43,686 nucleotides of DNA from Perkinsus chesapeaki ATCC PRA-425 (lineage: Eukaryota; Protista; Perkinsozoa). Position numbers and translations under genes: made by a program. This document shows positions 369-33,796 of the stretch, piece after piece (the stretch's first letter is position 1; the number at the start of each line of letters is the position of its first letter). A model generated the notes under the pieces. It did no database searches. It worked only from the letters and a program-made list of their open reading frames with translations, and was not told the DNA's origin. Location: contig JAAPAO010000281.1 of NCBI GenBank assembly GCA_013115145.1, forward strand, positions 1 to 43,686. The letters run 5' to 3'.

Positions 369-390
369 AACACGACTCGTGTTACACGAG
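369..390. other. Inverted-triplication scar (T=AACACGAG), perfect
   Basis: aacacga-ctcgtgtt-acacgag. Confidence 0.9.
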
Positions 391-412
391 AATTAGTCGC
401 GAGCATGACGCA

Positions 413-434
413 TGTTGACAGTCAACAGTTGACT
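413..434. other. Inverted-triplication scar (T=TGTTGACT), perfect
   Basis: tgttgac-agtcaaca-gttgact. Confidence 0.9.
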
Positions 435-836
435 GCGTACCCTGCTTCCATTGGAAGTGTTTTGCCATACCGAGAAATAGGTATTTATTTGGCTTTAATT
501 CACGACGCTCGGCTTCGGAGCGCTGTAGCCCACTGGATTCAGCGTTTAGACTGGATGTTACAGAGTGCGACATCCGTGAGGATTGTTAGATCCTCCAGCA
601 CAGCCTCGTAACTTTCGTGACAGTGTCAACACTCGTCCATGAATGATTTGTCGTGATATGGCCGAAAGTAGTCACAGTAGTTTCCTCACAGTTGAAACTC
701 AAATACAACAGATGCAGGAGTATGTATACTGCGGCGCAAAGGCCTTAACTAGATTAATGGATAGCTGCGTTAGGGAACGCATCGGTACAACAAAGGAGTA
801 TACACCACAAAGTCTACCCCTTTATGTCATTCCCAT

Positions 837-1265
837 TCAATAGCATGTCCCGTTCAATAAGAGGGTCCTCTCACTGCCGCCAAACGTCAACTTCAATTCT
901 TCGTTGTTTTTCTGGGATGTCAATTCTTTCGTATCATTATCACCCACGGTATAGTGATCACGACAGGCTGACTTCATATGTCGAACGAAATCATTGTATT
1001 CACCCTCGGAGCTGGGATCAACAACGTATGAATTGATCTTAGACTCGTCCATATTGAACGGGGACATGCTTGAAACCGAATTGAAGAAGCATTTAACTCG
1101 ATATTCCACAGTCAGAGAAGTTACATCTCCACCGCATTCCACTTCTAAGCAGGTAAACGGCTCTATCAGAACAGCGTAGTGGCCTTTAGGAGTTGGTGGG
1201 AGTCCTCCAACATATAGCGTCATACTGCAGTAGCAGAGAACGGTGAAGACGGAAGTAGTCACCAT
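837..1265 (-). CDS. 142-aa predicted secreted protein, paralog of 9536-9964
   Basis: Single-exon ORF with a hydrophobic N-terminus. Aligns almost ungapped to 9536-9964 (PPTP.G.YA, five mature Cys, NS.VVDP.SE, TVGDND, F.GSER). Confidence 0.85.
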   Translation of the reverse strand: MVTTSVFTVLCYCSMTLYVGGLPPTPKGHYAVLIEPFTCLEVECGGDVTSLTVEYRVKCFFNSVSSMSPFNMDESKINSYVVDPSSEGEYNDFVRHMKSACRDHYTVGDNDTKELTSQKNNEELKLTFGGSERTLLLNGTCY

Positions 1266-1589
1266 GAGCGGAGATAAACTAAGCCTGAGGATACTTTGTT
1301 AAATTGCAATGAAGCCCGACATGAAAGATTTGGACACCTCTTTAGCCTTATCCCGGAGCACGCGTGCACCTGCAATTGTAGGGTAACAAACCAAAGTCCC
1401 AAGGGGTTGGGTAATGGAGAAAATAAAAACCTAGTAATTAGGGAGTGATTTAAGCTGTAGCTTATCCTACATCACTCATAGCTAGGAATATGCGTGCATA
1501 GACAGAATGCAGGAGAGGGAGCACTGTATACAAGGTGACACGATAGGGCTATAGTGGCTCCGCACAATGGCTCCATGGTGCCTTGTCTA

Positions 1590-1611
1590 CACGTGAGTCA
1601 CGTGACGTGAC
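1590..1611. other. Inverted-triplication scar (T=CACGTGAC), perfect
   Basis: cacgtga-gtcacgtg-acgtgac. Confidence 0.88.
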
Positions 1612-1841
1612 GTAGCGCTCTACATTCTAGACTAATGCGACTTGCTCCACACAATTCACATACAGCGGGACAGACTGGAATAATTGTGCTAAAAGAGTCT
1701 CACTTTGATTAGGACTCAAAGAAAAGATTTTGGCGGAATCATGACGTACGACAGTTGGCCCCATACTGATGTGAGCACGATAAGTTAGTGAAGCCTAGGA
1801 ATTCCAGGACTCACTCTACAATTGAACCCACTTTTCCACGA

Positions 1842-1863
1842 GACCGGCCGCCGGTTACCGGCG
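1842..1863. other. Inverted-triplication scar (T=GACCGGCG), 1 mismatch
   Basis: gaccggc-cgccggtt-accggcg (predicted middle cgccggtc). Confidence 0.8.
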
Positions 1864-1956
1864 GTCACCATTTAACTGTGACACCTGAGCAATTACAGCT
1901 GAGATATTATATGCGACCCAATCGGAGGTATTCGTATTAGGCACACTCCTCACATG

Positions 1957-1978
1957 GCGCTATCATAGCGGCGCAATG
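1957..1978. other. Inverted-triplication scar (T=GCGCTATG), 2 mismatches
   Basis: gcgctat-catagcgg-cgcaatg (predicted gcgctat-catagcgc-cgctatg). Confidence 0.65.
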
Positions 1979-2013
1979 TTATTCGGTAAGGTAGTAGAAG
2001 TAAATGGCCTGAC

Positions 2014-2035
2014 ACCGATATTATCGGTCCGATAA
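2014..2035. other. Inverted-triplication scar (T=ACCGATAA), perfect
   Basis: accgata-ttatcggt-ccgataa. Confidence 0.9.
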
Positions 2036-2500
2036 CCTACGCTTAGCCGCCGTGCGAATCGCTTAAAGGAAGCAAGTAGTAGATTAACAAACACTGATCT
2101 TTACAACAAAGATGGATAGAACATAGAGTAGCACTAGCTCTTCTCCGAGCGCTCAAGTGGCTACGGTAAAAGGCAAGATTGAATGCTCAAAGTTCTTGAG
2201 ACGAAGTTTCTGGTGTCGCAATTGTGTTTTGGCAGTTGTACCCACTCTACTGGATTGCGTCTGTGTCTTCCGCTGGAAGGAGTAAAATCTCTTGACATCT
2301 GGCTGCATTCTTATCCAGTGACGCTTACAGTGAAGGTATTCCACCATCTCGGGAGTTGCACATAGAATGGGTAGTTCAAGCAATCTTCGGGGTTGGGCTA
2401 TAAACTCTCACCCACGCGATGGTGCTTTCAGCGGCCAACAATGTGATCAATAACCCTATCTTGTAGCCGCGTCTATATTGCAGACATTCACATACGTTTT

Positions 2501-2533
2501 ACAGGATCCCCTCACCTGGTGAGGGGATCCTGT
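2501..2533. repeat. Perfect 16-bp-arm palindrome with a 1-nt centre
   Basis: ACAGGATCCCCTCACC-T-GGTGAGGGGATCCTGT. Confidence 0.9.
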
Positions 2534-2809
2534 CCGCCTCGGGTTTCCGAAACACCACATAGATCGATGATTGCTCAGCGGCCGTTGTTTTACACTCCGT
2601 GTAGAATACTAGTACACAGACTCTGCAGTACGGAGGCAATGTGGACCTACTCTTCGGGCATTTGTCCCACCCACAGCGTCGGCAGGGTACCCCAGATTCA
2701 CTTTGTGTGTCAACCAACAGTTTGTGGCTTACCAAGGTCGCAGGGATCTACTGACACCACCCGTATTTACCTCGCTCCCCTTCACAGGGATAGAAGACTT
2801 CTGCCCCCT

Positions 2810-2974
2810 AATGGGGAAACTTTAACACGACGCCAGTTGGCGCAAAGTACAACTAAGAACACTAACATGCTTATAACAACAAGTCTCTAGCGACGATCAC
2901 TCCTGGGGAAATCCCAAGCGCTCGAACATTTAGTCCTGCGCCCGCCTGGGAAATCGATACAATTTGAGCAATCA
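2810..2974 (-). repeat. 3' LTR (165 bp)
   Basis: Base-for-base identical by eye to 9276-9440. Minus strand starts TGATTG and ends CCCCATT. Preceded by the PPT. Confidence 0.93.
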
Positions 2975-2984
2975 CGCCCCCCTC
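2975..2984 (-). other. Polypurine tract (PPT)
   Basis: Minus-strand GAGGGGGGCG immediately 5' of the 3' LTR. Confidence 0.75.
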
Positions 2985-2992
2985 GGCGGCAC

Positions 2993-5539
2993 CTAGTGCC
3001 GTCCGACCGAGTCGCCTAGCTCCCATTGTTCACCATCCAACCACAGCCGTTCGTCCGGAGATCCATCCCTCCAACGAACTTGGACATGACCGCTCTTAAA
3101 CTCTCGAATAACATCAGCTTCATACCAATGTAGTCCTCTTTCCCCCCGCACCCTTAACTTGACTTTGATAGGCATCCCAATTCGGTTCGGAGAGCTCTGT
3201 ATATCGCGGGTGCAATCCAACATAGGGTCGTCGCTTTCGTCCAAGTCCAAACAATCTTGCTCCATATCACGAGTCACCGGAAGCAAATTGTAGATATTCT
3301 CTCGGGTCACTCTTTGTTGTTTACCAGGAAATATAATATCCACGGTATGGTCTCCGCGAATAGCGATGACATGGCCAACGCGCCAGTCAAACCCTAACTT
3401 CCGATTGACAGGAGCATAGACCAACGCTGCAGAACCAATCTCAAAGCTGAAAGCAGTCTTACCCTTTGGACACTTATGCCTAACGGACTCCAGGGCTCGC
3501 TCCTTTAATATTATCCAGTGGTAGTCTACAAATTCTCTGCGCATAATCAGAGCATCGCGGCCGGGGCGTATCGGGTCAGCAGATTTAGCATACCCAAAAG
3601 CTGTCGTGCTGGCCCTTGTATACCCCCAACATAATGAATCAGGAGTAACGATACGCCGCTGGCCCTCGGCATCATGGTAGTAGGACAGAGTCGGACGAGT
3701 GTTGAGCAAGAGACAAACTTCGAGAAGAAGCAAGTCAAGGTCATCATCCGTAAGGTCGGCTACTTTCCCGCAATGTCCGCGGAGCATCACTCGCAGTTTA
3801 CGCCCTCCGAGATCGTGCACCTTCTCATATCGTCCTCCTTCAAAAGGCGAACGTACACTCAAAGGCTCAACTTGAGCTCCGAGAGACTCGTCACAAAGGG
3901 CGCTGAATCTCTGAGTAGAAAAGTAAGAAGCTGCATCGACCACTAATTCCTTCAAGCCACCCATCTCCAACTGGACCTTCCTCAAGGTCATCATGACAGT
4001 AGAAAGGTCTTCGCGTGGCGCTCGTTTCCAACATGTATGACCAGTAACCAAACACGTCACACTGATGACCTTCCGCCCTTCGCCCAATGCATAATAGTCG
4101 ACCCCACAACGATAGTAAGGAGGGTAGAATTTCAATCTTTCCACATGCCCCTTACCCAGGCTAGGCGGGGTAACCCACACTCGGCGAGCACGTGCTAGCT
4201 GGCACGTGAGACACGTCTGTATAAGCCTCTTCGCGACTTGTTCGGCGCCCTTCATGTGGAAGTCGCATATCGCAGAGCAGGTGCCAGGAATAGCACTATG
4301 CCTTGTCTCTCGATGGGCTGTTCTCACCACCAGACTTCTCACATCTTTGGCCGACTTCGGGAGTATAGGTAAGAAGCTCACTCGACCAGAGGCGTGTCCG
4401 GTTCGATACGCCAAATAACTCGCAGTGGTACCATCAACCTCCAGTCTAAATAAGGGACCGCAAGGCCGTAAGTTAGACGTGTCATCCGCGTCGACTTCTG
4501 ACGAATACTTCTCATCATACAACTGAGCGCTCCGACAAACAAGCTTATCCATTGCCGCTGGGTCATAACGTCTCAGTTGTACTGGCTTCTTAGTAGCATT
4601 AGCTCGGAGTATATCAAGAACACAGCAAGCACCCCAGACCACCCGCCGGAGCGAAGACAAATCGTAGCATACCTTCGCTCCCCGTTCAACCAAAGGCTGC
4701 AACTCGCAGGACCTGGATGGAGGTGCAATTCGAAACAACGAATCTGTTTCTATCCCAATGAAAGACACCACATCATAAGCTGAAGCGCCATTCTCGATGG
4801 CCGATAGGGCCAGCCGGACTGCGGGTTCCGTGGCTGCTGCAACTTCGACCGTAGTATCTGCTGCTTCGGCTAATGCTCTCACGTTGTCATCCTCTTGGAG
4901 AATGACGTCTTGCTCTCCTGCCGGCTCCCACTCAGACACTAGGGGGTCGTCTTGGAGAGCACTCGTCACACGCGGCCATCCTTGACCTCTCCGATAACTT
5001 GGATCTCTCGCATAAATCTCATTCTCCCCGCCCCCCTTGCTGAGACACTCAGCCAAAGTGAGACGTGTTCCAGGGACTTTGCGGTCAAACACACGAGAAA
5101 GGGAGTCGGCGGTCTCGTTGGAAGAACCCTGGACGTGACGGATGTCGACTTTCGCCAGTCGTCGTATGGCCAGGAGCTCTTCGTGCAAGGCTCCTACAAG
5201 CCGACTCAAAGAGCGTCTTTCGACGCCACGCGAGTTACCTAAAATCTCGGCACTGTCGACGTTACCAGACCAGCTAACACACGCTGCATTATCGCAGTAT
5301 AACTGTATCTCCACAGCCTCACAGGTCGCGTCAATCGCAACATCATTTCTGTACTTCAGAAAATCATAAAGATCTTGAAGCAGACGAAGCAAACACACTA
5401 CCTCTCGCCGGTTGCTATGCCACTTCAATTCACCAGCTTTGAAACGAAAACTCTCGGCGAATAGCGGATATGAGGATGTCGAATCGACTCTGTAGACCAC
5501 GTATCCTCCACCGCTCAAGCTAGCATCACTATATGGCAT
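2993..5539 (-). CDS. Retrotransposon RNase H + integrase + C-terminal SH3/Tudor-like segment
   Basis: RNase H motifs YSDAS, YCDN and NETADSLSR. Integrase HHCC (HRETRH...CLTC) and DDE (GVDYY, VVDAASYF, GGRYE; D-36-E). Also LNTRP and TPDSL motifs. Confidence 0.93.
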   Translation of the reverse strand: MPYSDASLSGGGYVVYRVDSTSSYPLFAESFRFKAGELKWHSNRREVVCLLRLLQDLYDFLKYRNDVAIDATCEAVEIQLYCDNAACVSWSGNVDSAEILGNSRGVERRSLSRLVGALHEELLAIRRLAKVDIRHVQGSSNETADSLSRVFDRKVPGTRLTLAECLSKGGGENEIYARDPSYRRGQGWPRVTSALQDDPLVSEWEPAGEQDVILQEDDNVRALAEAADTTVEVAAATEPAVRLALSAIENGASAYDVVSFIGIETDSLFRIAPPSRSCELQPLVERGAKVCYDLSSLRRVVWGACCVLDILRANATKKPVQLRRYDPAAMDKLVCRSAQLYDEKYSSEVDADDTSNLRPCGPLFRLEVDGTTASYLAYRTGHASGRVSFLPILPKSAKDVRSLVVRTAHRETRHSAIPGTCSAICDFHMKGAEQVAKRLIQTCLTCQLARARRVWVTPPSLGKGHVERLKFYPPYYRCGVDYYALGEGRKVISVTCLVTGHTCWKRAPREDLSTVMMTLRKVQLEMGGLKELVVDAASYFSTQRFSALCDESLGAQVEPLSVRSPFEGGRYEKVHDLGGRKLRVMLRGHCGKVADLTDDDLDLLLLEVCLLLNTRPTLSYYHDAEGQRRIVTPDSLCWGYTRASTTAFGYAKSADPIRPGRDALIMRREFVDYHWIILKERALESVRHKCPKGKTAFSFEIGSAALVYAPVNRKLGFDWRVGHVIAIRGDHTVDIIFPGKQQRVTRENIYNLLPVTRDMEQDCLDLDESDDPMLDCTRDIQSSPNRIGMPIKVKLRVRGERGLHWYEADVIREFKSGHVQVRWRDGSPDERLWLDGEQWELGDSVGRH

Positions 5540-7245
5540 ATAGTATATGCGCTCAGCTTCAGCGTCGAATTACCCGCCGAAAGATCTCGGACTAACGATC
5601 GGTGGTCACATACTTCGACCAACAACTCGGCCATCCACTCGATCAAGCAGAGGTATGCACATTGTAATTCATGGTTTAAAGTCTGTATGTGGATTTCGAC
5701 CAACCAATCGATCTTCGCAAACTGACGACCAACCAATGACCGCAGAGAGTCAGCGCATGCTCTTGCTAGGACATGTTGACGCGCGGGATCAAAGGCTAAG
5801 CATCCAGCCGCCTGGAAGACCTGACGCTTTGAGGTAAGAGAACTGCTGCGGGTATGCTCAACGAAGTCCCTCACAACCAGCATACGTTTCTCACGCTTGC
5901 AAACCATTACCATATAGAGGCCCTCGTATCTCACCATCATACCAAGCAGCGAACCTTCCTTTGCCAAATCCGGTGGACTACCGGAGAACTCGGTGGCCAA
6001 GGCTCGGTGGACGTCTTCCTTCACCGCGTCGCAGCTTAACACATGCACTTTCGCGACCTGCGCATCGAAGCCGGCCAACTCCATCACACCCAAGGTTATA
6101 CGAAACCTGTGGAGGACCTGACGTACTTCCCCGCTGAGAGCAACGTCGTCAACAAAAATAATAAGTATGGCAAACCCTCCTGGAATGGGGACAATACGAA
6201 CCTGGCAACCACAGGACCGAGCCAGGTCTATCAACCGACCAAGATTGGCCGATAGGCCGCTAGGACCAACAACTATACCAAAGACTAGACGAGAACTCTG
6301 GAAGGTTCCAATACCCGTATCAAGGGTTAAAACATACGGTTCACCATTGGAATCAACTAGTCTCACCTTGTAGAAGGCGGCTCGGGCATCGCCTATCACA
6401 GTCAACCTCCCCCCGAGCGCTCGCATAGCAACAATTGGCAGCCATAAACTCGGTGGGTTGGAAGACGCTTTAGGAAGCCTCTCAATTATATCTCGCATGT
6501 CTACCACTAACCTTGGTTTACGGGATCCTCCGGGAAGCAAAAAAACTTGCGCTCCAGGTAGTTCATCCTGTTTGTGTAACCTGTCAGTAGTCTTGGGTTC
6601 CCAAAACTTGGAATCCACGTAAGCTTCAACCAGATCACGGTAGACGCTCTTCAACTTGGGAGTCAGACGTTCATGCAAACGCACTGCATAGGACCTACAA
6701 CGTATCTGACTCGGATTTTCCACTTTAGGCACCATAACTTCACAGATAAATCGTTGGTTAGGTAGATCGAGACGATCAGAGACTCGCGCAGCGCGGACAC
6801 GGGCCTGGTACATGCCACATGTGCTCGGGACCGTCACCCACGATTCAGGCACTAACTCGGATAATAAGTCGTGGATGAAGGCCTTCTCGTCCTCACTAAA
6901 CTTTGGACAACAGGTCTGTAGTGGGGCAGTGCGGCCGGCGAGCAAAGTATCGTGGGGTCGTTGAGTCCCATCTACGACCACCGCGACAGACTCAGTCAAG
7001 ATCTGTTGTACCGGAACAGGAGCTCGGTATATGCAACGGCTCCATCCCGGTCCAGCATAAGCTTCCAAAGAACTTACAATGAGAATTCCCCAATCCGCGA
7101 TGAGTGATCTTCCAGCCAGGATCGACAAATGTGGGCTAGTCGAGTTCGTTGGATTAGGGAGAATCCTTAACCGAGTTAAGTTAACTCGGTTGAAACACAT
7201 AACACACGCTTCAAGTCTACATCCAAGAGACTCAAAGAACAGCAT
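5515..7245 (-). CDS. Retrotransposon reverse transcriptase segment
   Basis: Motifs PRLVVD, IGDARAAFYKVRL, RLVFGIVVGPSGL and FVDD (YxDD equivalent). The frame is open from 7266. Confidence 0.92.
   Translation of the reverse strand: MLFFESLGCRLEACVMCFNRVNLTRLRILPNPTNSTSPHLSILAGRSLIADWGILIVSSLEAYAGPGWSRCIYRAPVPVQQILTESVAVVVDGTQRPHDTLLAGRTAPLQTCCPKFSEDEKAFIHDLLSELVPESWVTVPSTCGMYQARVRAARVSDRLDLPNQRFICEVMVPKVENPSQIRCRSYAVRLHERLTPKLKSVYRDLVEAYVDSKFWEPKTTDRLHKQDELPGAQVFLLPGGSRKPRLVVDMRDIIERLPKASSNPPSLWLPIVAMRALGGRLTVIGDARAAFYKVRLVDSNGEPYVLTLDTGIGTFQSSRLVFGIVVGPSGLSANLGRLIDLARSCGCQVRIVPIPGGFAILIIFVDDVALSGEVRQVLHRFRITLGVMELAGFDAQVAKVHVLSCDAVKEDVHRALATEFSGSPPDLAKEGSLLGMMVRYEGLYMVMVCKREKRMLVVRDFVEHTRSSSLTSKRQVFQAAGCLAFDPARQHVLARACADSLRSLVGRQFAKIDWLVEIHIQTLNHELQCAYLCLIEWMAELLVEVCDHRSLVRDLSAGNSTLKLSAYTICHIVMLA
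5529..5550. other. Inverted-triplication scar (T=CTATATGC), perfect; frameshifts RT/RNase H
   Basis: ctatatg-gcatatag-tatatgc. Collapsing it to T restores KLSAY-SDAS on the minus strand. Confidence 0.92.
7166..7187. other. Inverted-triplication scar (T=CTTAACTC), 1 mismatch; frameshifts PR/RT
   Basis: cttaacc-gagttaag-ttaactc. Removing 14 bp restores VSTEL-RILPN on the minus strand. Confidence 0.88.
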
Positions 7246-9275
7246 ACAACCCAGTCTACCTGGGTATTAACACCATCCGCCAAAGTGACGGCGACAGGCT
7301 TCGACAGTCTCACTGGATCGACTCCAATGATGTCACTCAAACATTCAACAGAAGGTACCAGAAGATAGGATCCGCCGGCGGCTGTGTCAAGAACACAGCG
7401 TCCCGGGAGAACTTTACCACCAGTTGGAGCACCAAAACGAACAGAAACACCAACGATAATTTCAGGAGGGACCATCACTCTCCTGGCCTCCTTAAACTCA
7501 CAGCTTGAAAGAGAACAAACATTATCAGCAAATAACCGATCTATAGAGCCAGAAAGGGCTTGATTTGATACATATGTAGGATAGGATTCTAACTCAGATG
7601 GACATCCGGTTGCGACCGAATCCTGAAGTCGCACTCCATCACGCGTCTCAATTAGAGTTTCGAGTGGACGCCCAGTTTGGGTACGCCCCCCAGTACGAGC
7701 CAAGCGTTCCTGGAACCGCCATGTTCGGAACAGATCCTTAGATAGCCCAGAGATTTTGCTCTTAGCTACTGACTCATCCTTATATCCCAAAATATAATAG
7801 GTCCGACCGGCTTGACTGGTTCGAGGTAGGAAGCCGTCGGGTTGGCTTGACGCGAACAAAGACTTCTTATCCCGGCACCCTCGGCCTGCAACCCCATAAG
7901 CAACAGCGAAGCCCTTAACCCAGTCGGTAGCTCTCACTCGAGGAAGGGATTGGTCTAACACCCTAGCGACGCTAGAGCTATCGTGGCCTTCCACTGGGGT
8001 CTGTACGGACCTGACCGAATCTTGATGTGGGTCAAACTCCTTCTTAACACAGTCTGCTTCTTCCAGTAGACGGCACTCGGTTTTGATGAACTCCGTAAGG
8101 GTAGCCTCAGTACTCCCGTCCAACGAGTGAAACTCAACCGCTACTTCCCAGTCACCTTCCTGAGCTGCACAGCGCTCGCGGCAGCGACGAATGACGCCGA
8201 CCACAACTTCACGGGGTAACTGAGCTAAGACTTTTCTGACGAATTGGACCCTCTGGGCCGTGTCAGTTTGGTGCACGATCCTATAGAGTTCATTGACAGC
8301 GATAATGTCCTTGAGGTAAATCTCCACCCCTGTCACTCCTGGAAATTTCAGCTTCTTCAATCGCTCTTTCAATTCTTCCAATAGGATTGGCCTCTTAGCA
8401 AACTGCTTCTTGCATGCCCCAACAATAACACCCCACCGGTCTCCATGGATCTCGTACAGGGCTAGAGCTCGATCATAGACGGTTGGACATCCTTGTAAAG
8501 TAGGGAGTAGCTTCTGTGTGCAAGTATGACGTAGATCTCGATGAGGAAAAAAAACTTCGCCTGTAACATCGAACTCTCCAGCCCCAATCTCGACGAGAAC
8601 CTCCTCTAAACGGCGGCAATGCTGAGGGAACTTGAACGAGTCCTTCAACTCGACAACGCTCAGTTTCCCAACAACTCCCGCATCACAGTGCCTGCGGGTG
8701 GTACGCTCTCCATTTGACTGTGGACGGGGTGAAGGCAGCACTGATATGAGGTCGTTCACAACTTCTGGTTGACCGTCAGAAAGAGTCTCAGAGGTCCTTG
8801 GGTTTTCGTCAAATTTGAGCGAACGGCGGACGTCCGCAATGGATGCCGCTTCGCGTTCGCCTGCCTTGTGGCTGGTACTTGTCGAGATGTTAGTGACAGC
8901 ACGCATGTTCATGAGCTCTTCAGAACGAAACTCCAGTTCCACGATGTAAGTGATAGCTTCCTCCAATGCCTTCTCGGATTCTCTTTCTCGACGGTGCAAT
9001 TCCTCTAACGCTTCATGATCGTCCTCGGAGTCTCCAATTATGTTGTCCATAGCTTCTCTCACATTCTTTAGCTGGGTCCTCACTCTTCCTCGATAAGACC
9101 TTGCCTTGCGTAACTCTTGTCGAAGCTCGTTCTGGTCGGTGAAGGCTGCTGCTGATTCTCTCCATCCTCGACGCTCGGTGCTGCTATCTTGCGGGTCTTC
9201 CGGCCTGATTTCGATATGTGGGGGCTCTTCTTCGTCCCCTTGAGGGTCACGGTGTATAGACGCAGGTGTCGCCAT
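7176..9275 (-). CDS. Retrotransposon gag plus aspartic protease (N-terminal part of the polyprotein)
   Basis: 699-aa ORF starting right after the 5' LTR, with an N-terminal coiled coil and the protease-like motif CVLDTAAGGSYLL. It terminates inside a 14-bp scar. Confidence 0.8.
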   Translation of the reverse strand: MATPASIHRDPQGDEEEPPHIEIRPEDPQDSSTERRGWRESAAAFTDQNELRQELRKARSYRGRVRTQLKNVREAMDNIIGDSEDDHEALEELHRRERESEKALEEAITYIVELEFRSEELMNMRAVTNISTSTSHKAGEREAASIADVRRSLKFDENPRTSETLSDGQPEVVNDLISVLPSPRPQSNGERTTRRHCDAGVVGKLSVVELKDSFKFPQHCRRLEEVLVEIGAGEFDVTGEVFFPHRDLRHTCTQKLLPTLQGCPTVYDRALALYEIHGDRWGVIVGACKKQFAKRPILLEELKERLKKLKFPGVTGVEIYLKDIIAVNELYRIVHQTDTAQRVQFVRKVLAQLPREVVVGVIRRCRERCAAQEGDWEVAVEFHSLDGSTEATLTEFIKTECRLLEEADCVKKEFDPHQDSVRSVQTPVEGHDSSSVARVLDQSLPRVRATDWVKGFAVAYGVAGRGCRDKKSLFASSQPDGFLPRTSQAGRTYYILGYKDESVAKSKISGLSKDLFRTWRFQERLARTGGRTQTGRPLETLIETRDGVRLQDSVATGCPSELESYPTYVSNQALSGSIDRLFADNVCSLSSCEFKEARRVMVPPEIIVGVSVRFGAPTGGKVLPGRCVLDTAAGGSYLLVPSVECLSDIIGVDPVRLSKPVAVTLADGVNTQVDWVVCCSLSLLDVDLKRVLCVSTELT
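9262..9274 (-). other. Putative primer-binding site
   Basis: TGGCGACACCTGC starts 1 nt after the 5' LTR. TGG is complementary to tRNA CCA. The priming tRNA cannot be identified from this window. Confidence 0.5.
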
Positions 9276-9440
9276 AATGGGGAAACTTTAACACGACGCC
9301 AGTTGGCGCAAAGTACAACTAAGAACACTAACATGCTTATAACAACAAGTCTCTAGCGACGATCACTCCTGGGGAAATCCCAAGCGCTCGAACATTTAGT
9401 CCTGCGCCCGCCTGGGAAATCGATACAATTTGAGCAATCA
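9276..9440 (-). repeat. 5' LTR (165 bp)
   Basis: Identical to 2810-2974. Followed on the minus strand by A-TGGCGACACC (PBS-like, overlapping the gag ATG). Confidence 0.93.
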
Positions 9441-9535
9441 CCCTCCCGCCGCCGCTGACGTGGTAAAACAATTAAGTGCCTGGACAATGAAAAAGTCGAG
9501 GCATGATAAATAGAATATGGTCGTGGGATTGTCGG

Positions 9536-9964
9536 TTAATCCCAACAGGTTTTATTGAAGACAAGAATACGTTCGCTTCCGGCAAATGTTACATACAACT
9601 GCTCATTGTTGTTTCTAGATACGAAACGCTTCATATCATTATCACCAACAGTAAGGTCTGGAGCACAAGTAGTCTTGATCGCTCGGATATATGTGTTGTA
9701 GGCTTGCTCGCTCTCGGGATCAACAACGAACGAATTGAGCTCAGTCTCTTCCATCTCCAAAGTGGTGCTAGGCATAACAGCTGAGTCACATTGAACCCAG
9801 AGTTGGGCCTTCAGTGTGGTGAAATCTCCAATGCAGTGAACTTGAACACAAGTATCTTCATCTATGTTCAGGGCATAGTTACCATTAGGAGTTGGTGGGA
9901 ATCCAGCAACACACAAGATGAGGTAGCCAAAATAGCCGAGAATGGTGTAGATGAAGTGAGACAT
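9536..9964 (-). CDS. 142-aa predicted secreted protein, paralog of 837-1265
   Basis: Same length and conserved motifs as 837-1265. Lies between the solo LTR and the 5' LTR. Confidence 0.85.
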   Translation of the reverse strand: MSHFIYTILGYFGYLILCVAGFPPTPNGNYALNIDEDTCVQVHCIGDFTTLKAQLWVQCDSAVMPSTTLEMEETELNSFVVDPESEQAYNTYIRAIKTTCAPDLTVGDNDMKRFVSRNNNEQLYVTFAGSERILVFNKTCWD

Positions 9965-10086: not shown

Positions 10087-10251
10087 CATGGGGGAACTTC
10101 AACACGACGTCAGTTGGCGCAAAGTATCACTCGGAACACTCGCATGCTTATAACAACAATTATCTAGCGGTGATCACTCCTGGGGAACTCCCAAGCGCTC
10201 GAACATTTAGCCCTGCGCCCGCCTGGGAAATCGATACAATTCGAGCAATGA
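10087..10251 (-). repeat. Diverged solo LTR of the same family
   Basis: Co-linear, same-length copy of the LTR with scattered substitutions. Flanked by AACT/AACT (GAAACT if the boundary is shifted by 2 nt). No PBS or internal domain next to it. Confidence 0.9.
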
Positions 10252-11061
10252 AACTACAGATCATCATAGTTCGAGGATAAGCATCCTCAGCTGCTGCTGC
10301 TGATACCCGCTAAATATGACATGTGTTAGTTGACGTCGCCTGACTCATGCAGCCACGATGCTTATTGTAGCCTGGGGAATCTGTAACTTGACTCGACGTC
10401 AAGGTACACTTGTGACCGAAGCAACCGGTCACCACCGTGACGCGATTTTCACCATTTTTGATACGAGATTGGTTGGAGATATCTGTTTGAGGCCTTTCCA
10501 TCACGATGTGTGCTCCCCCATGATTAGAACGCCGCATATGTTCGGCTTCCGCATTATAGCATTCCATCTCAGTTCCTTGTTCAAGTTCACTGGAAACTCC
10601 TACTCATGTTGATTGTGAGTAATCCCATCCATCCCGTCCGGGAATACAGCCAACAGAATTGTTGCCGATGCGCAAGAGTTCTGTTAGGATTAAAAGGACC
10701 TCCTTCTACGGACGAGCTCAGATGTTCCCTGGAGCTGCGAGTCTTTTTCAGTTCTTGCCTCGCGCGAGGATATCCCGTGAAATCGGTCTGCCGTTGTGCA
10801 ATCCTACCCATTGGCCCAACCTGGAAAATAGTAAAGCTTCGTCCTTGATAGTGTGAGTCTCACCGCGAGACTGTCACGCACGGCGATTAATTGTGCTTGT
10901 AAAATTGACAGTACTGCAGACGCAACACAACTTAATTTCCGTATTGTACTGAATAAATGGTGAATGATCAATATTCTCTTCGAGATTTCTTAACGTTCAT
11001 TGTTGTTGGTGGTGTGGCCATCCATGATGACTGTCATCATTGCCACTCCACGAGTTACCCC

Positions 11062-17000: not shown

Positions 17001-20000
17001 CAGGTGCAGGGTGTACCCTTACCGATATCAATAGGGATATATCTCGCAAGGTCTCCGCATAGGTCTCTTCGATCATCGATGTTGAGATGTCATCAAGTCT
17101 TGCTAGAAGCATCGTGATTTGACTATTAGCCTGAATACATTCAACTCACAGTCGCCAAGAGGGGTGGAGGCGGCCACTTCATCACCTTCACAACCCTGTC
17201 CCGAAGTTCAGGGGACATTGCCTCCTTCTCGGCATGCTCCGTCGTCGATTGTTCCATCATCTCATCATCGACATCCAAAGCATGCTGTAGAGCGCTAAAA
17301 TAAACATCAACAACTATCCACTAGAGTAAGAAGTTGTTCAGTAATATGCCTTTTATAAGCCTTACCTTCATACAGGCTACATGTCACTCTACTAAGGGGA
17401 AATGGTTTAAAAGGAACATCAACATTGTTTCAACAACTAAGCCTCATTTTCCGGCTTATAGGATACTCAATAGCTCCAGAGAGTGCCCTTCTGGCATTGT
17501 TACGCCAAAAGTGTGAAGATCGCATTTCCTCCGGTATTAACAAGAAAATCATCCTTCCAAAGTTCGAATTGTCCTGCGGAACTATGAAGACTATAGGATC
17601 ATTTGGTAGCGATAACTCCGTCCAGCTGGCCCATTGAAGCTGCTTACTCTTTGTAACCTTGAAGCTTCCCTGCCATATTCTGTTTAACCTTTTTTATATC
17701 GACCCACTGCCTATCAAAGTCCATTATCGTCCAAAGGTCTTGCTCATCCAACACGGGACGATACTTACACCGCAGCATCCTGATAAAAGGCAACACTATC
17801 AAGAAGAAGGAAGCTGTCTCGAGCCCCCATTCCACTGCACCGGGCTCGAGGGTTTGTTGCGCTCCTCTGAGCACACTGAGCGGAAGTAGGAGAACTTTGT
17901 CACCACCCAGGGGATAGAGTGGGAGGCTCCCTAGAGGTAGCGGAATTGGAGACGCTGGACCCTTTGGAAGAGGTCAGTGCAAATTCATAATTTACACTTC
18001 TTCAACGACACTTTTCTTCTTACCCGTTCCATATCGTTGGTATCTCATACCCTCGGCCTTTAACGTCTCTCAGTAGGACCTCTATTAGCGGTATGACTTG
18101 GAACCTATAATGTGAAATGGGCCACCACTCAGCTTGGATACAACACAATCACTTGTATGTGTCATCAGCGAACACTTGAGAAAAGGAAGCTGGAGTGGTA
18201 CTGTAGGAGTCTGGATTCGGGAACACGTCTGCCTGAAAGCAAGAAGAGGTTAAGGATGCATCGCACGTCGCTGAAAGATACTCTCTCCCGTATCTTGGCA
18301 TAAATCCACTTAGCCTCAACACTCCATTCTTGGTTATACATCTCCTTATCAGTTGCTGCCTTTGCCGCCGACTCGGCCTCAGCAGGGTCCAATGCAATCT
18401 GATAACTCGGTAACCACCACATCACACCCACAACAACAAAGTCCCACTCCTTCAGCTCCCACAGCAGCGGGCACTGCTTTAAAAGCAGCGATACAGCGAG
18501 CAGCGGCATTGGGGCCATACTCGGCTTGATAACGTTCGGGGATCTAATAACATTCCATCACCACTCGCCCCTTCTCCCTATTAAACTTACGTTAGCTCTG
18601 GCTATTGCTTGATCCTTGGCTGTTACGAAACGGGCTGCCATTTCTTCGGGGTCGAATCTTGCCTATCGAAACTGGTGAAGTCAAAACCATGGCCGAGGTC
18701 CTAACCTCGAGATCCTTCTCTGGATCACCCGCGCCCGCCTCGGCCATCTCAGCATCCCTATCTTCCTCCTGCTGCTGCTGTATCGCTGACATCCTACCGG
18801 CTGCCAAATTGAGGACTCTAGCATCTCCAAAGACTTCCTACAAAAGTAATATGCCACCACCATACCATCACGAAAGGTACTTACATCAATTTCCTGCAAT
18901 AAGCCAGCCATATCTTCACCGTATCTGAGAACACCGCCATACAACACAACGACTATGAGGGCGCTAGCAACCAATCGCTACTACGAAGTGTGATCCCTAG
19001 GTCAATTGGCACTTATAGGCGACTTCAGAGTAACAGACTGAGTAGCCCGTTGGCAAAAGTACGTCATTAATAGTAATCACTAGATACTAGTGATCATTAA
19101 AGAGCTTGAATGGGACTCCCCAGTGGTATGATTCAATACGGTTAAGCCCTCTGGTATGAGCGGAATGTTATGAGAGTCAAGTCCATAAAAGCATCTCCAA
19201 GCCATTTGAGTGTCCAAATCAACCATCACGGACATAGTAAATTTCTGTGAAGACATTGTAGCAGATAGGCCTCCAGTCGCTGATGTACTGGTTATTACCT
19301 TTCGGCATACTCCCTCCCTCTATTAGGCAGATCATCATCATCGACATCTCTACCGGAGTCACCTGCTTCTCGGACCTACTACATGTACTACCCAAGATTC
19401 CCTCATAAAGAAACTACAATGAAGTCCGCAAGGGAATCATTATCCGAGTCATTATCGTCTCCCCTATCCCTTCTAGAGGCCGGGGATCGTCCCTGGTCAC
19501 CGAGACCGTCCTGAGCAAACGTAAGCTCATTGGCAATATCTAGTCCAGACATGCTACTGCAAAGTCATCATCATCGAATAGGCGGTCTTCTAGAGCATCG
19601 GCAGATGTAGCGGTAATGTGCTGAGCTTTGGTGAAGTCCCTGAGCAGGAGGCGATAAAGGCGTCCCTCCCCAGAGCTTTAGTCCACTTCTGCTTCTTCAG
19701 CCTAGAAAAGCCCTTCTTTCTTCCGCCCAGTAGGCTATCATCATCCGAGTCATCATCTCCACCAGCACCTCCAACAGGAGCCCTCTCCGTCCCACCAGAC
19801 GTCCCAGCATCAGCGCTTCCCCCTTCGGCTGCCTTGGTCGCAGCGGCCTTTCTCGCCATAATACGGGCATATCTAAAACATAAACCTTAAATAGGAACAC
19901 CCACTATTTGCCCTACGCTTCAGGATTGGTCTCTTTAACAATAAGCAGATCACCGTCGTCTATGTCATCTGGATCGAGCTCACTGTTCTCGTCCTCACTA

Positions 20001-20673: not shown

Positions 20674-21693
20674 CTAGTGGCGACGGCGACCCTTGGTAAC
20701 AGTCTGGAACCCATCCTCGTCGATTTCCGGTTCGGGCTTGGCCTCGACGAGCTTCGGTACAGCTGAGAAGTGATTATTTTACGTAATCATAAGAGTATTG
20801 ACTGTGATCAAGTATAGATTTAATACTACATTCGTCCCCCTCCTCATCCTCGCCAGATGAGCCTTCTTCAGCGCATTGCTCCAGTACCTATTAAGATCAC
20901 ATGGGACCAGATATACCACACGGTGCATTCCCTTATCAACAACCTATTTTTCCCCCATTTTCCTCCGAGGCTACATGACTCCCTACCATAAACCCGATTA
21001 CAGTCAAAACAACTCGAGCTTTACGCGAAGTCAAGCTGCTTGATAGATCCCTTCGCCTCACCAATGGCTACTTAATAAACCACTTCACCCTCATCTATTC
21101 TCGGGTTTCTCAGAAGATGCGTTCGAAACGCAGCGCTTCTATCCCATGATGGAGTACGACTGATTGCCCTGTCAATACCATACCCCACCAAGGCTTACTT
21201 TAGCCTGATCACGACCATCAGTGGCATGCATCACTTCCTGAGCAACGCTGAGATCTCCTCGACTACAGGACTCCCATAACCTTATGAGCATGAAGGCCAC
21301 ATCCTCGTCTGACCCATCCTCCAGTGCCTGCCCATGACCATCAAACCATGCTACTACCACAACAACTAGTACCATTTGGAAGTTACTGGCGACCAACTCA
21401 AATAGCTTATCGGCCAACTTCATAACCTGGTCGTTATTCTCGCTGGCCAACTTAGCTCCGCCCGACCGTAGATCGGCCACGATAGTCTCCGCTATAGATT
21501 CTATACGGTGCGAAGCCTCCCTAAAGATTCCTTATCCAGACCACCCGAACCCTAGGCACTACCTAGGATTACAATCGCAGTTCTCTTTCGCCAGAGTTAA
21601 AGCGGTCCAATGAGTGAATACGTGGTGGACTCCATCGAGGAATGCTTGCTCGCACTCAGCAGTCGCAGCAGCAGCAGAAGAAGAAGACGTCAT
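20674..21693 (-). CDS. TSR2: Pre-rRNA-processing protein TSR2 (multi-exon)
   Basis: AFLDGVHHVFTHWTALTLA, EDGSDEDVAFMLIRLWESCSRGD, and C-terminal PEPEIDEDGFQTVTKGRRRH*. Confidence 0.85.
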
Positions 21694-23537: not shown

Positions 23538-25814
23538 ATGTCTTTCGGTGATTCCCCTATACCGCAAGGTGTCTTTTATCAAAAGAGGTTGCCTGATGAC
23601 GAGCCATCAGTATGTAGTAAGGAAGGACGTAGACGTCTAGGTGACTCCATGGCTAACGGTCATGCTTATCCTTTCCTACCACTGATGTGCCAATTTAAAA
23701 CACAAGTACGAAGCCTTTAATAAGATATTAAGATATAATACTGTAGGACCAACCTGCCTATTGTGGCTTAGCTACTCTTACGATGACACTAAACACATTG
23801 GGAATAGACCCTTGGCGGACATGGAAGGGCGTCTGGAGATGGTAATAATAGGGCAGCGTTATAGCCGATCTACGGTATATATTACCCACTCTTCCCCCCT
23901 TGGAGTTGCCCATATCTTTGCCTGTACTGGCGCTCGTTTAATATGTTAACGTGCTCAATAGTTTCCCGTACTGGTCGCCTCAAAATAGGTATGACGAGAA
24001 CCATCTTGGTGATTGTTGCATTAACCTGGAGGCAGTAGCAACCGAAGGTATCACCATTGACACCTTTGTATGCCTAGCTAGATGCAATGGCCTCGGAGTT
24101 CAAGTACACAGACCACCAGTACTAACGACATGGCCAATGAAACGGTTATAGGATATCTTATCAGCTCCAAGATCAGCCATCAGACAGCTGTACCGAAAAT
24201 CCCAATGTCGATGAGGAGTTTCTCAGTAACTTCCGGGAGGCAGTGACGTCTTGGACGTCTGACGAGAGGATGTTAGAGTCTTGCGGGGGCCTCGATACGG
24301 TCATTGGGGAACTCTAAAAAGTGGCTGTTACTGGCCTTGGCAGGTACTTGTTGTGTCGTATGATAGGTCGACTGTAGGGCAAGCTGGAACGGGGCACTTC
24401 TCTCCGATAGGAGCCTACCATCCCGAGACCGATTCAGTGTTGGTGCTGGATGTCGCTAGGTTATATTAAAACAAACTGTTTGGTGTATAGGTGTTCCTAT
24501 CAGGTTCAAATACCCTCCACATTGGATAGAGCTTCCTCGGCTTGTTAAGGCTATGTACCCTGTAGATGATACTACAGGGAAGCCAAGGGGCTATATACTA
24601 CTTGCTCGAAGGAGGGTAATAGAGGAGGAACTTCTCAGGGACATCTAGTGGTCTCCTTCAGCCCGGATCATTACCACCTGAAGCGGGCCCAAAGCTGCTG
24701 GCATTAGCATCCATTCCGACATCGGCAACTGTATGCCTGACGGAACAGTTTCGACGGGAAATGCAGCGGCAATGCAGCAGCAGCATAAATGCAGACTGTT
24801 CGCGGAATGAATCCTCCACCCTTTCGGGGACAGATCTGTTGGTGGAAGTTTTTACTTGTTTTTTGAGAGCTGTTGCGAAGCTCGACTCTCCTATAATGAG
24901 GGGGGTCTTTTTTGCTGTTGCCGAGCAGAGGCGACTGGTTGATATGATTCACAGCTACGCTGACCCAGCTAAGCCTCGTTCAAGCTCGGATTCTGATTAC
25001 TCTACCTGCGCTTATGAAACTTATACGGGCGGCAGGAACGGCGCCATAGTCGCGGCTTTGCTGAATGCCTTCTTGGAGGAGAACTCTCATCCCCCAGTGG
25101 CAGGTCGATTGCCACCGGCTTTTGGGCCATCGCATGACAGGCCAGAATGGATGGATGATAAGGCTGTTGCCGCCGTATGGGCGGCGGTCTTCTTCTGTAT
25201 TCCAGATGAGCTTCTATTGATAGACAGTGATGCTTGTGGCAGCTCATCGAAAGTAATAGGGGAAGTGGTAGGGTGGCTGCGTAGATGCTGGCTTTAAGGT
25301 TCCAAGCCCATCTGAGGTCTTGCTTGACCTAACCGAAGGCTCAGATGATTACCAGCTTATAAGGGCATTTGTCTTTACGTTAAGGAGTAAGTGCTGTCCT
25401 GGTGATGGCGAGGAAGTCGCCCACTTCAAAGGCATGTGCTCATGCAAATGCCCCAAGCCCAAGGCGGGCAGCAATAGCTGCAGCTAGTTACCCGGTTGAT
25501 TAAAGGTCCATAGTTGGCCATCACTGTTCTTATACGCAACGTCTAACGTATGCCGTGCCACTAGAGGACTTGCTAAAGTTGGTCTTGGGAGTTGCGTTGA
25601 AGTTCCCAGGGACTTGACCAGGTTTTTATTGGCCATAATGAGCCAGCTTGGAGGAGGAGGCATCGATAGCCTATTCTCGTCGGACCTCACTCCACTGGGT
25701 CAGGCAGTTGGTGCTGATATACATGTTTTATCTAGGATACAGTCTTATATTACTTTACATAGACGTCGAAGAACAAAGAGGCATCACGTAGAGGAGGAGG
25801 AGGTGGAGGGGTAG
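23538..25814 (+). CDS. PCS: Phytochelatin synthase (multi-exon; 3' extent uncertain)
   Basis: [19 protein letters not shown]...[33 protein letters not shown] and FKYPPHW, which together give the Cys-His-Asp triad. ORFs at 24761-25297 and 25614-25814 are the likely C-terminal exons. Confidence 0.88.
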
Positions 25815-28684: not shown

Positions 28685-29886
28685 GCTGAGGACCATGCAG
28701 GACACGGTCTCTTCCAGTGGGCCGCCACCACAGGACCTTATTTACTCAACCTCGGATGGAGCTAGGCTCATGGGTGAGCTTGGTGTGATGGGTGCTGTGA
28801 TGGCTGTCCTGCTGCTGGGTTTTAGATTTCAATCCTGAGGTGTCTGTACCGAGGATAATGAAGTGTGCTGGGGTGTATGCTGGAATGAAGGATGAGGAGG
28901 CGGCCTTCGCTAAGATACAAGTCCAGTAACAACAACTGCACGGCTGGTCTGTGGTAAGGTGCCCCCCCTGTAGGTATAACAGACAGATAGCGACCAAACC
29001 GGTGCCGCTGGACGCTGGCATGGCCAAGGCCTGTCGAGATAGGAGGGAGGACTGTGGGGCAATGCTGAGCAGGAGGGCTCTCAAGTTGGGGGGTATTGAT
29101 GATAGGAAGCCTCCTCCAGGAAAGCCTGAAAGTAGTGCTGTCTGCCGCACTGTGTATGGCTATGAACCCGCTATGGTTGCTGCATTCGTCATACAATACT
29201 GCTTACGTCAATACTGTATTTCTATCGGTTGTCTGTACTGACGTATCGGTTCCATGTGCGTGTATAAAATCAATCACATCTATCTACATCATACCGCACG
29301 TATTACATATAGGGTAGACTATATAACACATTACCGCACGTATTACATATAGGGTAGACTATATAACACATTTTCTGATGCCTCTGACCTCTGACTCGGT
29401 CCACATGATGTTTGCTATCAGATGAGGAGGAGAGGCAAAGGCGGCTGTCGGCAGCCTCAGACCTCCGAGAGCTCTGGTCTAGCTACATCAACACTACATG
29501 CATAACAGAGGACGGCCGGCTCAGGATGAAGGAGCTCCGCCAAGCATCTTGGATTGGGGCCGAGGTGGAGGTCATCGACTCGAGGGATAAGACGATGATA
29601 GGGATGGGTGGTACGGTTATGATGGAGAATCAAAACAGTCTGGTAGTGCTGGACCACGAAGATGCTAGGTGAGCCAGCCAGGAGTTTCGTGGCGCAGTGA
29701 CGTTCATACCCTTCCAGATACCGGCTGTTACCAAAGTCAGTGTGCACCTTGGAGTTGAAGATACCGTTATCGCTTGGTGGCATCGAGCGGCGAGTGACGG
29801 TCTTCGGGCCTCTGCTGAGGGATAAGCCATCGGCTGGTCACGGCAGCGCGCCCTCCCGAACCAGGCTCAAAAAGATGTTTCTATGA
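28410..29886 (+). CDS. POP4: RNase P/MRP subunit POP4 (Rpp29); 5' exons uncertain, core 29412-29886
   Basis: LRELWSSYI, WIGAEVEVIDSRDKTMIGMGGTVMMENQNSLVV and LLPKSVCTLEL...VTVFG. Confidence 0.78.
28642..28684. repeat. (CAT)14 microsatellite
   Basis: Direct reading of the sequence. Confidence 0.95.
29292..29371. repeat. Exact 40-bp tandem duplication
   Basis: taccgcacgtattacatatagggtagactatataacacat present twice. Confidence 0.95.
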
Positions 29887-32861: not shown

Positions 32862-33796
32862 ATGACGAACAGAGCAAGCTGCATGTGAAGCAGGATTGCA
32901 GTGTACCAGCTAATGACATTGTTTCACTTTCTGTTCTACACCACCTTGGCTGCCGTTCAAATAGCCATACTGTTATGGTGTTTCACTGGCCCTAGGACCA
33001 GATGCACCGATCGTAGGAGGCAGACATTGATGGCTGGATGTGGCCTCCTCTGGTGCCTCCTGACAGAGCTCATAGAGATAAAAGGCTATCGGGAGGCATC
33101 GGGAGAGAGGTATGCTCAGGGGAGCTGACTTACGAACGCAGGGATCATCAGATTCCACCGCGCAATAGGTTGAAGATGTTGTTGTTCTATTTTTAGATGG
33201 TGTGACTTACCTATTACCATGTTATCATGCTCTCCTCTATTGGAGTCCAAGATAAACCATCTCTATCTGTATTGGGGAATAGTCGCTGACTGGTCGTTCT
33301 TCAACAGGAGCATCGCCACTGTTATGGGAGCCCTCTTTGGATTCATGCTATTCGTGAGCCCCTCAGTAACCTTTGTATACCTCACTTTTGCCCTTCAGGT
33401 GGAGCCTTACATTCGAGAGAGAGCCGGCCCCCTCGGCCCGCCAATCTGGCTTTACCCCATCTCCAAGATAGCCTGTATCATCGCCTTGGCCTCTATCAGC
33501 TATCTCTTCGTTGCCGCATGGTTTCAGCTAGAGCTTATACCGATTCTCCCGTAGTGCCCTCTAAATTGCTCAACTACCCTTTTCATATCGGTGCCTTCCT
33601 CAGATACGGTCCCATCCTCGCCTGCGCTGCTGGCCTCTTGCAGGCCGTTTCCAACATTGAGCGAGACAACACTGCACTTTACAAGTACATGGTGGCCCAA
33701 CGGCGAGAGCAACTGAGGGCTGCCCGTGGAGCAACAGCGGGACCAACGATGGCAGGGTCCGAGGCTACCGCCGAAGATAGGAAGAAGACTACGTGA
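32862..33796 (+). CDS. Uncharacterised multi-pass membrane protein (multi-exon; start uncertain)
   Basis: Consecutive hydrophobic ORF segments at 32901-33128, 33219-33554 and 33518-33796, separated by short introns. Confidence 0.55.

Follow-up and report, generated by a model that had tools for sequence, protein, structure and literature searches.

Transposases of the hAT superfamily form hairpins on the DNA flanking the element and use 8-bp targets (bioRxiv 10.1101/2022.09.16.508221), and the idea that their excision leaves palindromic footprints has, like the underlying chemistry, been known for decades. Here we describe a set of 22-nt scars in Perkinsus chesapeaki, a member of a genus of oyster and clam parasites, that probably arose in this manner. 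The stretch of DNA that we analysed (the window) is the complete contig JAAPAO010000281.1 of assembly GCA_013115145.1, 43,686 nt in length; the sequence ends at position 1, and its closest protein matches are from Perkinsus olseni. A scar is defined as the 22-mer T1-7 + rc(T1-8) + T2-8, in which T is any 8-mer and rc stands for the reverse complement, with a net gain of 14 nt over a single T.

The closest described counterparts are the footprints of Ac/Ds in maize, Arabidopsis, S. cerevisiae and Candida albicans (PMC5873905, PMC1978519). As we propose for Perkinsus, they originate from an 8-bp target-site duplication (TSD) and are joined through microhomology; the base adjacent to the element is lost and its complement stands in its place, and the inverted copies of the flank, or P-nucleotide palindromes, are centred on that complement of the outermost TSD base. 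P arms reach up to 20 nt in yeast, and microhomology is found in 85-100% of the joints in yeast and Arabidopsis (PMC5873905). Ac/Ds footprints are nevertheless heterogeneous, with 28 types among 128 events in Candida, and their P tracts are mostly 1-3 nt long in plants and Candida. In Perkinsus, in contrast, the full form, whose two P tracts together cover the 8-mer from end to end, dominates among recognisable footprints, and what we observe are fixed, germline-equivalent mutations along a natural genome rather than events at a reporter locus.

Other systems resemble the scars in part. The coding joints of V(D)J recombination, produced by RAG and Artemis, share the off-centre opening of hairpins and the palindromic P additions; however, RAG nicks exactly at the border, leaving no unpaired tip base and giving palindromes of even length, there is no TSD, the ends have no complementary P tracts in common and the tracts are short. 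The equivalent 8+8+8 form was not found here. The Mutator-like element (MULE) Muta1 also makes flank hairpins and has TSDs of 8-9 bp (PMC5499845), but more than 90% of its excisions in yeast are precise, its hairpin shows no 1-nt offset on a gel, and no such footprints have been reported for it. Finally, duplication-inverted triplication-duplication rearrangements (DUP-TRP/INV-DUP) and short template switches have the same direct, inverted, direct arrangement, but they vary in size and need prior inverted repeats or microhomology, whereas the Perkinsus scars have one fixed size that would be tied to the stagger of the transposase. A genome-wide study of footprints in rice found heterogeneous deletions and filler DNA (PMC4423477). 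Our literature search returned no natural genome with full-length footprints of such uniformity, the exact 7+8+7 joint possibly having been seen already at reporter loci, and no description of excision footprints of any kind in Perkinsus. What appears to be new is therefore the full-TSD inverted triplication as the dominant recognisable outcome in a natural genome, and its density in Perkinsus.

We scanned the window exhaustively for the 22-mer pattern, with 20 and 30 first-order Markov shuffles as controls, and sought decayed copies with a majority-vote scorer that tolerates mismatches. The five perfect and three near-perfect sites listed in an earlier note on this DNA were recovered at exactly the same coordinates, and two candidates were added (no site has a strand):

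369-390, perfect 7+8+7 scar, T = AACACGAG, from the pattern scan
413-434, perfect scar, T = TGTTGACT, from the pattern scan
1590-1611, perfect scar, T = CACGTGAC, present in X1, X2 and X4 contigs (see below)
1842-1863, scar with one mismatch (first arm, outermost base), T = AACCGGCG, found in reads
1957-1978, scar with two mismatches, T = CCGCTATG, found in reads
2014-2035, perfect scar, T = ACCGATAA, found in reads
5529-5550, perfect scar, T = CTATATGC, at the frame break between an open reading frame (ORF) bearing reverse transcriptase and an RNase H-integrase ORF, found in reads
7166-7187, scar with one mismatch, T = CTTAACTC, where the frame breaks between ORFs 1 and 2 of a retroelement, found in reads
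10857-10878, candidate older scar with two mismatches, T = GTCTCACG, between a solo long terminal repeat (LTR) and the 3' end of SPT6
21118-21139, candidate older scar with two mismatches, T = TGCGTTTC, from the majority-vote scan

Perfect scars number five in the window and 0.0 in the shuffles; the earlier estimate of 1.6e-4 perfect matches by chance (43686/4^14) is arithmetically correct. A comparison of other unit lengths with the shuffles, one of the checks proposed in the earlier note, gave a single peak when the pattern was generalised on this contig to units of k = 4-14 and junction offsets of d = 0-3: the excess lies solely at k = 8, d = 1 (5 versus 0.0), and no other cell exceeds expectation. 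Forms with d = 0, including 8+8+8, have no match at any k in this range, and footprints of the RAG/Transib or other offset-free hairpin type (even palindromes, 5-bp TSD) are absent here. The majority-vote scan found three sites with two mismatches (1957, 10857 and 21118) against 0.25 expected, and 13 with three mismatches against 4.4 expected, a surplus that suggests older scars in decay. The ten inferred targets are unrelated 8-mers with no internal requirement, and they yielded no consensus.

We consider it quite probable that each 22-mer is the excision footprint of a cut-and-paste transposon with an 8-bp TSD and flank hairpins, its geometry pointing to hAT. The transposon cycle, the opening of hairpins far from their tip and repair by annealing are what we infer; the first two steps below follow established hAT chemistry. 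Insertion would double the 8-mer T. At excision, the transposase would nick one base into each flank, and the 3'-OH of the flank would attack the opposite strand. On the left, the top strand would be nicked after T7 and joined to T8' (the prime denoting the complement), producing a hairpin T1-7 / T8' / T7'..T1'; by symmetry, the right flank would form T8'..T2' / T1 / T2..T8. A host nuclease would then open the hairpins on the 3' side of their tips, at distances of p and q bases, so that the 3' tails would end in the first p bases (a prefix) and the last q bases (a suffix) of rc(T). Because both tails come from the same T they would be complementary over p+q-8 bases, and their annealing, followed by fill-in and nick sealing, would yield T1-7 + rc(T) + T2-8.

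The product derived in this way matches the observed 22-mer at every base, the 1-nt 'loops' T8' and T1' among them. Every pair of openings with p+q > 8 converges on the same 22-mer and the same +14 nt, which would explain why the product is uniform, and the earlier proposal that hairpins are opened beyond the TSD becomes unnecessary. Other expectations of a hAT footprint also agree with the data, and the inference of the earlier note has in this respect gained support: only the 8-bp unit is enriched, only with an offset of 1 nt; the palindromes are centred on T8' and T1', the complements of the outermost TSD bases; the frame steps of a retroelement and the flanking translations fit a net insertion of +14; and the six scars compared with reads are present there.

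The same kind of footprint could have been left by another superfamily with 8-bp TSDs, namely Merlin/IS1595-like elements, MULEs or an unclassified group with offset flank hairpins, and the window itself, in which no hAT is visible, leaves room for this. A 1-nt offset is, however, the documented signature of hAT and has no documentation in other superfamilies with 8-bp TSDs; for Merlin no hairpin chemistry is known to us. Merlin has TSDs of 8-9 bp and Merlin-related ORFs occur in P. marinus, but no terminal inverted repeats (TIRs) or TSDs were found for the Merlin copies of Perkinsus (PMC8101967). MULEs do form flank hairpins and may have 8-9-bp TSDs, but on the gel the Muta1 hairpin migrated as 86 nt, taken to be 43+43 nt, and thus shows no offset (PMC5499845), and an offset-free hairpin would yield the 8+8+8 form that is missing from the window. 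We therefore regard a non-hAT source as improbable.

The excess at a single length and offset also bears on mechanisms that involve no transposon. Template switching and the snap-back synthesis of polymerase theta make short inverted copies of adjacent sequence, and fold-back copying of the last eight bases would give an inverted triplication. Such events vary in length, however, and need prior microhomology or palindromes, whereas ten unrelated 8-mers have here given one length and one offset, with no other k or d enriched. This makes a transposon-independent origin very unlikely.

How uniform the outcome of excision is can be judged from shorter products. Classical footprints with short P tracts would read T1-7, the first p bases of rc(T), the last q bases of rc(T) and T2-8, and we scanned the window for this pattern at all p+q < 8. 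Two candidates were retained:

17418-17436, no strand, candidate variant footprint 7+5+7 (+11 nt), T = ATCAACAA, at most 0.03 expected
329-345, no strand, weak candidate variant 7+3+7, T = AAACGAGG, 0.23 expected per stretch

The first lies inside the span of the SPT6 gene, probably in an intron, and the second is plausible mainly by its position, 24 nt from scar 369. Both would belong to the same footprint family and, as candidates, have been counted in favour of the hAT origin. Site 42179 is a weak 7+2+7 match, and the remaining matches with p+q < 8 can be put down to chance or to repeats of low complexity. When footprints retaining 7 nt of each TSD copy are counted, there are thus about 8-10 of the full form to 2-3 shorter ones. 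The uniform outcome claimed earlier stands insofar as the full form dominates the detectable classes, but it is partly an effect of ascertainment: precise repair and flank deletions are invisible in one genome, so uniformity holds just among detectable footprints.

Scars 5529 and 7166 lie within a retroelement whose reading frames they break:

2809-9441, minus strand, LTR retroelement with LTRs at 2809-2975 and 9275-9441 and three ORFs, single-copy

Since the two LTRs are identical (167/167 nt), the insertion of the element is very recent; a solo LTR, 90% identical, is found 650 bp away at 10088-10249. The interior is single-copy in reads at a likeness of at least 88%, and no unscarred paralogue was found in reads, protein searches giving just P. 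olseni fragments and distant relatives. The ORFs (9275-7176, 7245-5515 and 5539-2993) have weak Pfam matches to RNase H and an integrase zinc-finger, and PDB sequence searches with them returned no match. Scars 7166 and 5529 coincide exactly with the two ORF junctions, and the frames (end coordinate modulo 3) step from 2 to 0 to 1, as expected from two insertions of +14 nt. The upstream frame ends at a stop within scar 7166, or 12 nt past scar 5529; the downstream frame has no stop in either scar and stays open past it. The P. olseni homologue P0001 aligns with the second ORF until 12 codons before scar 5529 and in the next frame, with the third ORF, starting at a conserved DASLSGGG motif whose first residue is encoded by the first codon after the scar. 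Between these two anchors there are 13 residues in the homologue, 15 in the stretch if a single T is assumed and 19.7 codons as it now stands; in this alignment the spacing is consistent with +14 and does not fix that number uniquely.

The public annotation places a single gene of 2030 aa over the whole retroelement (2993-9275, minus strand). One of its 'introns' (7259-7231, 29 nt) lies directly upstream of scar 7166, and another (5595-5531, 65 nt) swallows nearly all of scar 5529 (5550-5531), with about 96 nt more downstream. Since the scars shift the frame of the ORFs and the annotation bridges the breaks with tiny introns, gene models of Perkinsus may hold artefactual tiny introns, of which scars may be the cause.

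The fact that both of these scars break the polyprotein of an element with still identical LTRs is what would be expected of a domesticated hairpin-forming nuclease that scars foreign DNA as a defence, an idea put forward in the earlier note. The distribution of the scars argues otherwise, at least six of the eight firm ones being in host intergenic DNA and not in the retroelement. Moreover, ORFs make up about 95% of the retroelement, so that chance alone would place strikes in coding sequence. Nor could a nuclease that meets one T turn it into three, and a prior duplication of 8 bp, that is, an insertion, is required. With most scars in host DNA and a single T insufficient, the idea finds no support and we hold it to be highly improbable.

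The hAT-type footprint remains the preferred explanation, and six of the scars on which it is built are present in independent reads. We compared the window with Logan contigs of run X1 (2020, study P1) and runs X2/X4 (2022, study P2) over positions 1567-2838 and 2946-7300; scars 369 and 413 and the candidates beyond 1500-7300 lie outside this span. Scars 1590, 1842, 1957, 2014, 5529 and 7166 were found in contigs of X1 and of X2/X4, from two studies, with 0-1 substitutions relative to the stretch, no indels and a depth equal to that of the flanks, as for single-copy sequence. X2 and X4 carry two single-nucleotide polymorphisms (SNPs) relative to the stretch (2114 and 3513), so they are not merely the same data as the assembly. 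The six scars are thus confirmed as fixed in both samples and not errors of assembly, and the artefact absent from reads that the earlier note had considered did not materialise. An artefact of assembly, polishing or sequencing, imaginable because short palindromes can in principle disturb assemblers, has a practically negligible probability when six scars recur without indels at unit depth in contigs from three runs and two studies, two of these runs differ from the stretch by two SNPs, and a scar also occurs in another Perkinsus assembly, that of P. marinus. One RNA run gave no coverage of the stretch. In the region 1519-1596, additional short contigs of X2/X4 and a 2.9-kb contig match 1529-1588 with six differences and then diverge; this feature is a diverged repeat or an allelic bubble, and it ends beside scar 1590.

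The scars are unevenly spread along the contig. Six of them lie within 1.7 kb (369-2035), a count on which the earlier note was correct, and nine of the ten best sites fall within the first 10.9 kb (binomial 3e-5). By distance from the left end, there are 6-7 sites in the first 2 kb, 3 in the next 9 kb, 2 in the next 10 kb and none in the last 22 kb. This gradient agrees with local hopping out of a donor close by, coupled with selection against +14 nt in exons. None of the firm scars lies in a host exon; six of the eight are in host non-coding DNA and two in the retroelement. We regard the scars as mutations without function that can be tolerated where they lie in intergenic DNA, promoters, introns or transposons. 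The densest group sits upstream of a small gene:

837-1265, minus strand, intact host gene of 142 aa, an ORF

Four scars (1590-2035) are 325-770 bp upstream of the start of this gene and two (369-434) are downstream. Elements of the hAT superfamily are known to favour 5' gene regions, and the avoidance of exons and the dense group upstream of a gene fit this preference. The gene has a paralogue across the retroelement, at 9536-9964 (minus strand), also of 142 aa and 45% identical. Neither has a match in Pfam; both products are hydrophobic at the N-terminus, contain conserved Cys residues and, judging by sequence, may form a family of small secreted proteins.

Seven further loci (63 kb in total) were obtained through relatives of the retroelement protein. 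A 13.3-kb stretch of contig JAAPAO010000340.1 (locus L006), from the same assembly GCA_013115145.1, has a perfect scar at 3863 with T = CTCCTGAC, and 21.5 kb from P. marinus ATCC 50983 (locus L009; GCA_000006405.1, GG671975.1) include a scar with one mismatch at 14806, with T = ATCGGTAG, in the region spanned by a dynein heavy-chain gene. The chance expectation is below 0.01 for each, so the phenomenon is limited neither to this contig nor to this species, and P. marinus appears to have undergone the same process. No scar was found in 3.4 kb of another contig of GCA_013115145.1 (L003), in two contigs of the P. olseni series (5.4 kb in all; L002, which is named P. olseni, and L008, of a neighbouring accession), in 12.3 kb of another assembly or in a 7-kb metagenome contig. 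The density at 369-2035 is well above that of the other loci sampled. The L006 scar is situated 0.5 kb downstream of a different retroelement gene in the P. chesapeaki assembly, a gene whose annotated product has no colinear translation from the DNA.

Several points weigh against a hAT origin. As the earlier note had remarked, no hAT element is visible in the window, and no miniature inverted-repeat transposable element (MITE) was found either. Pfam searches with 33 of the longest ORFs found no transposase domain, the matches being the weak RNase H/integrase zinc-finger ones, SPT6 domains and SIR2 alone. The inferred targets show neither the Ac-type bias nTnnnnAn nor the Buster-type bias nnnTAnnn, a test of low power with n=10; T at position 2 or A at position 7 occurs in 6 of 20 symmetrised cases from the ten targets. 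These preferences of the Ac and Buster groups are typical and not obligatory. Both read sets carry all the scars checked, and no allele was seen that was occupied (T-element-T) or empty (T). That hAT transposases nick one base into the flank was reportedly observed in vitro by Zhou et al. in 2004; the papers cited here give it only indirectly. Finally, two scars in a retroelement with identical LTRs and six within 1.7 kb imply a very high rate of insertion plus excision. Two scars despite identical LTRs mean either that insertion followed by excision is very frequent or that the region is a hot spot.

Taken further, these rates raise the question of whether the +14-nt inverted triplication is a major class of spontaneous mutation in Perkinsus, owing to an unusually active, possibly host-tamed, hAT-type transposase together with the opening of hairpins far from the tip and their annealing. 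We put this forward as a speculation that is itself unlikely. If it were true, classical end joining would perhaps be weak or absent, promoters and new retroelements would be struck often enough to shape gene regulation and to inactivate retroelements, and the genome would hold a record of all its imprecise excisions that could be counted and dated. Excision footprints usually cannot be recognised without an empty or occupied allele. The Perkinsus footprint encodes its own target site, and one genome therefore gives a countable and datable record of excision. Such a record also shows how an alveolate parasite processes DNA hairpins and joins breaks.

The remainder of the contig holds the following host features:

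about 11-21 kb, minus strand, SPT6, with HHH_7 and HTH_44 domains
about 39.4-39.9 kb, SIR2-family gene, from Pfam
36837-36916, minus strand, tRNA gene, Rfam RF00005, 54.5 bits

We also looked at a pair of sites at 25656-25663 and 33092-33099, where the same 8-mer GGAGGCAT flanks 7.4 kb with a 9-bp inverted repeat, CGATAGCCT, at its two ends. This sole pair with an 8-bp TSD and a 9-bp TIR (25656/33099) is at the level of chance (0.2 expected) and encloses no Pfam domain, and was rejected. Lastly, positions 29292-29371 are a perfect tandem duplication with a unit of 40 nt.

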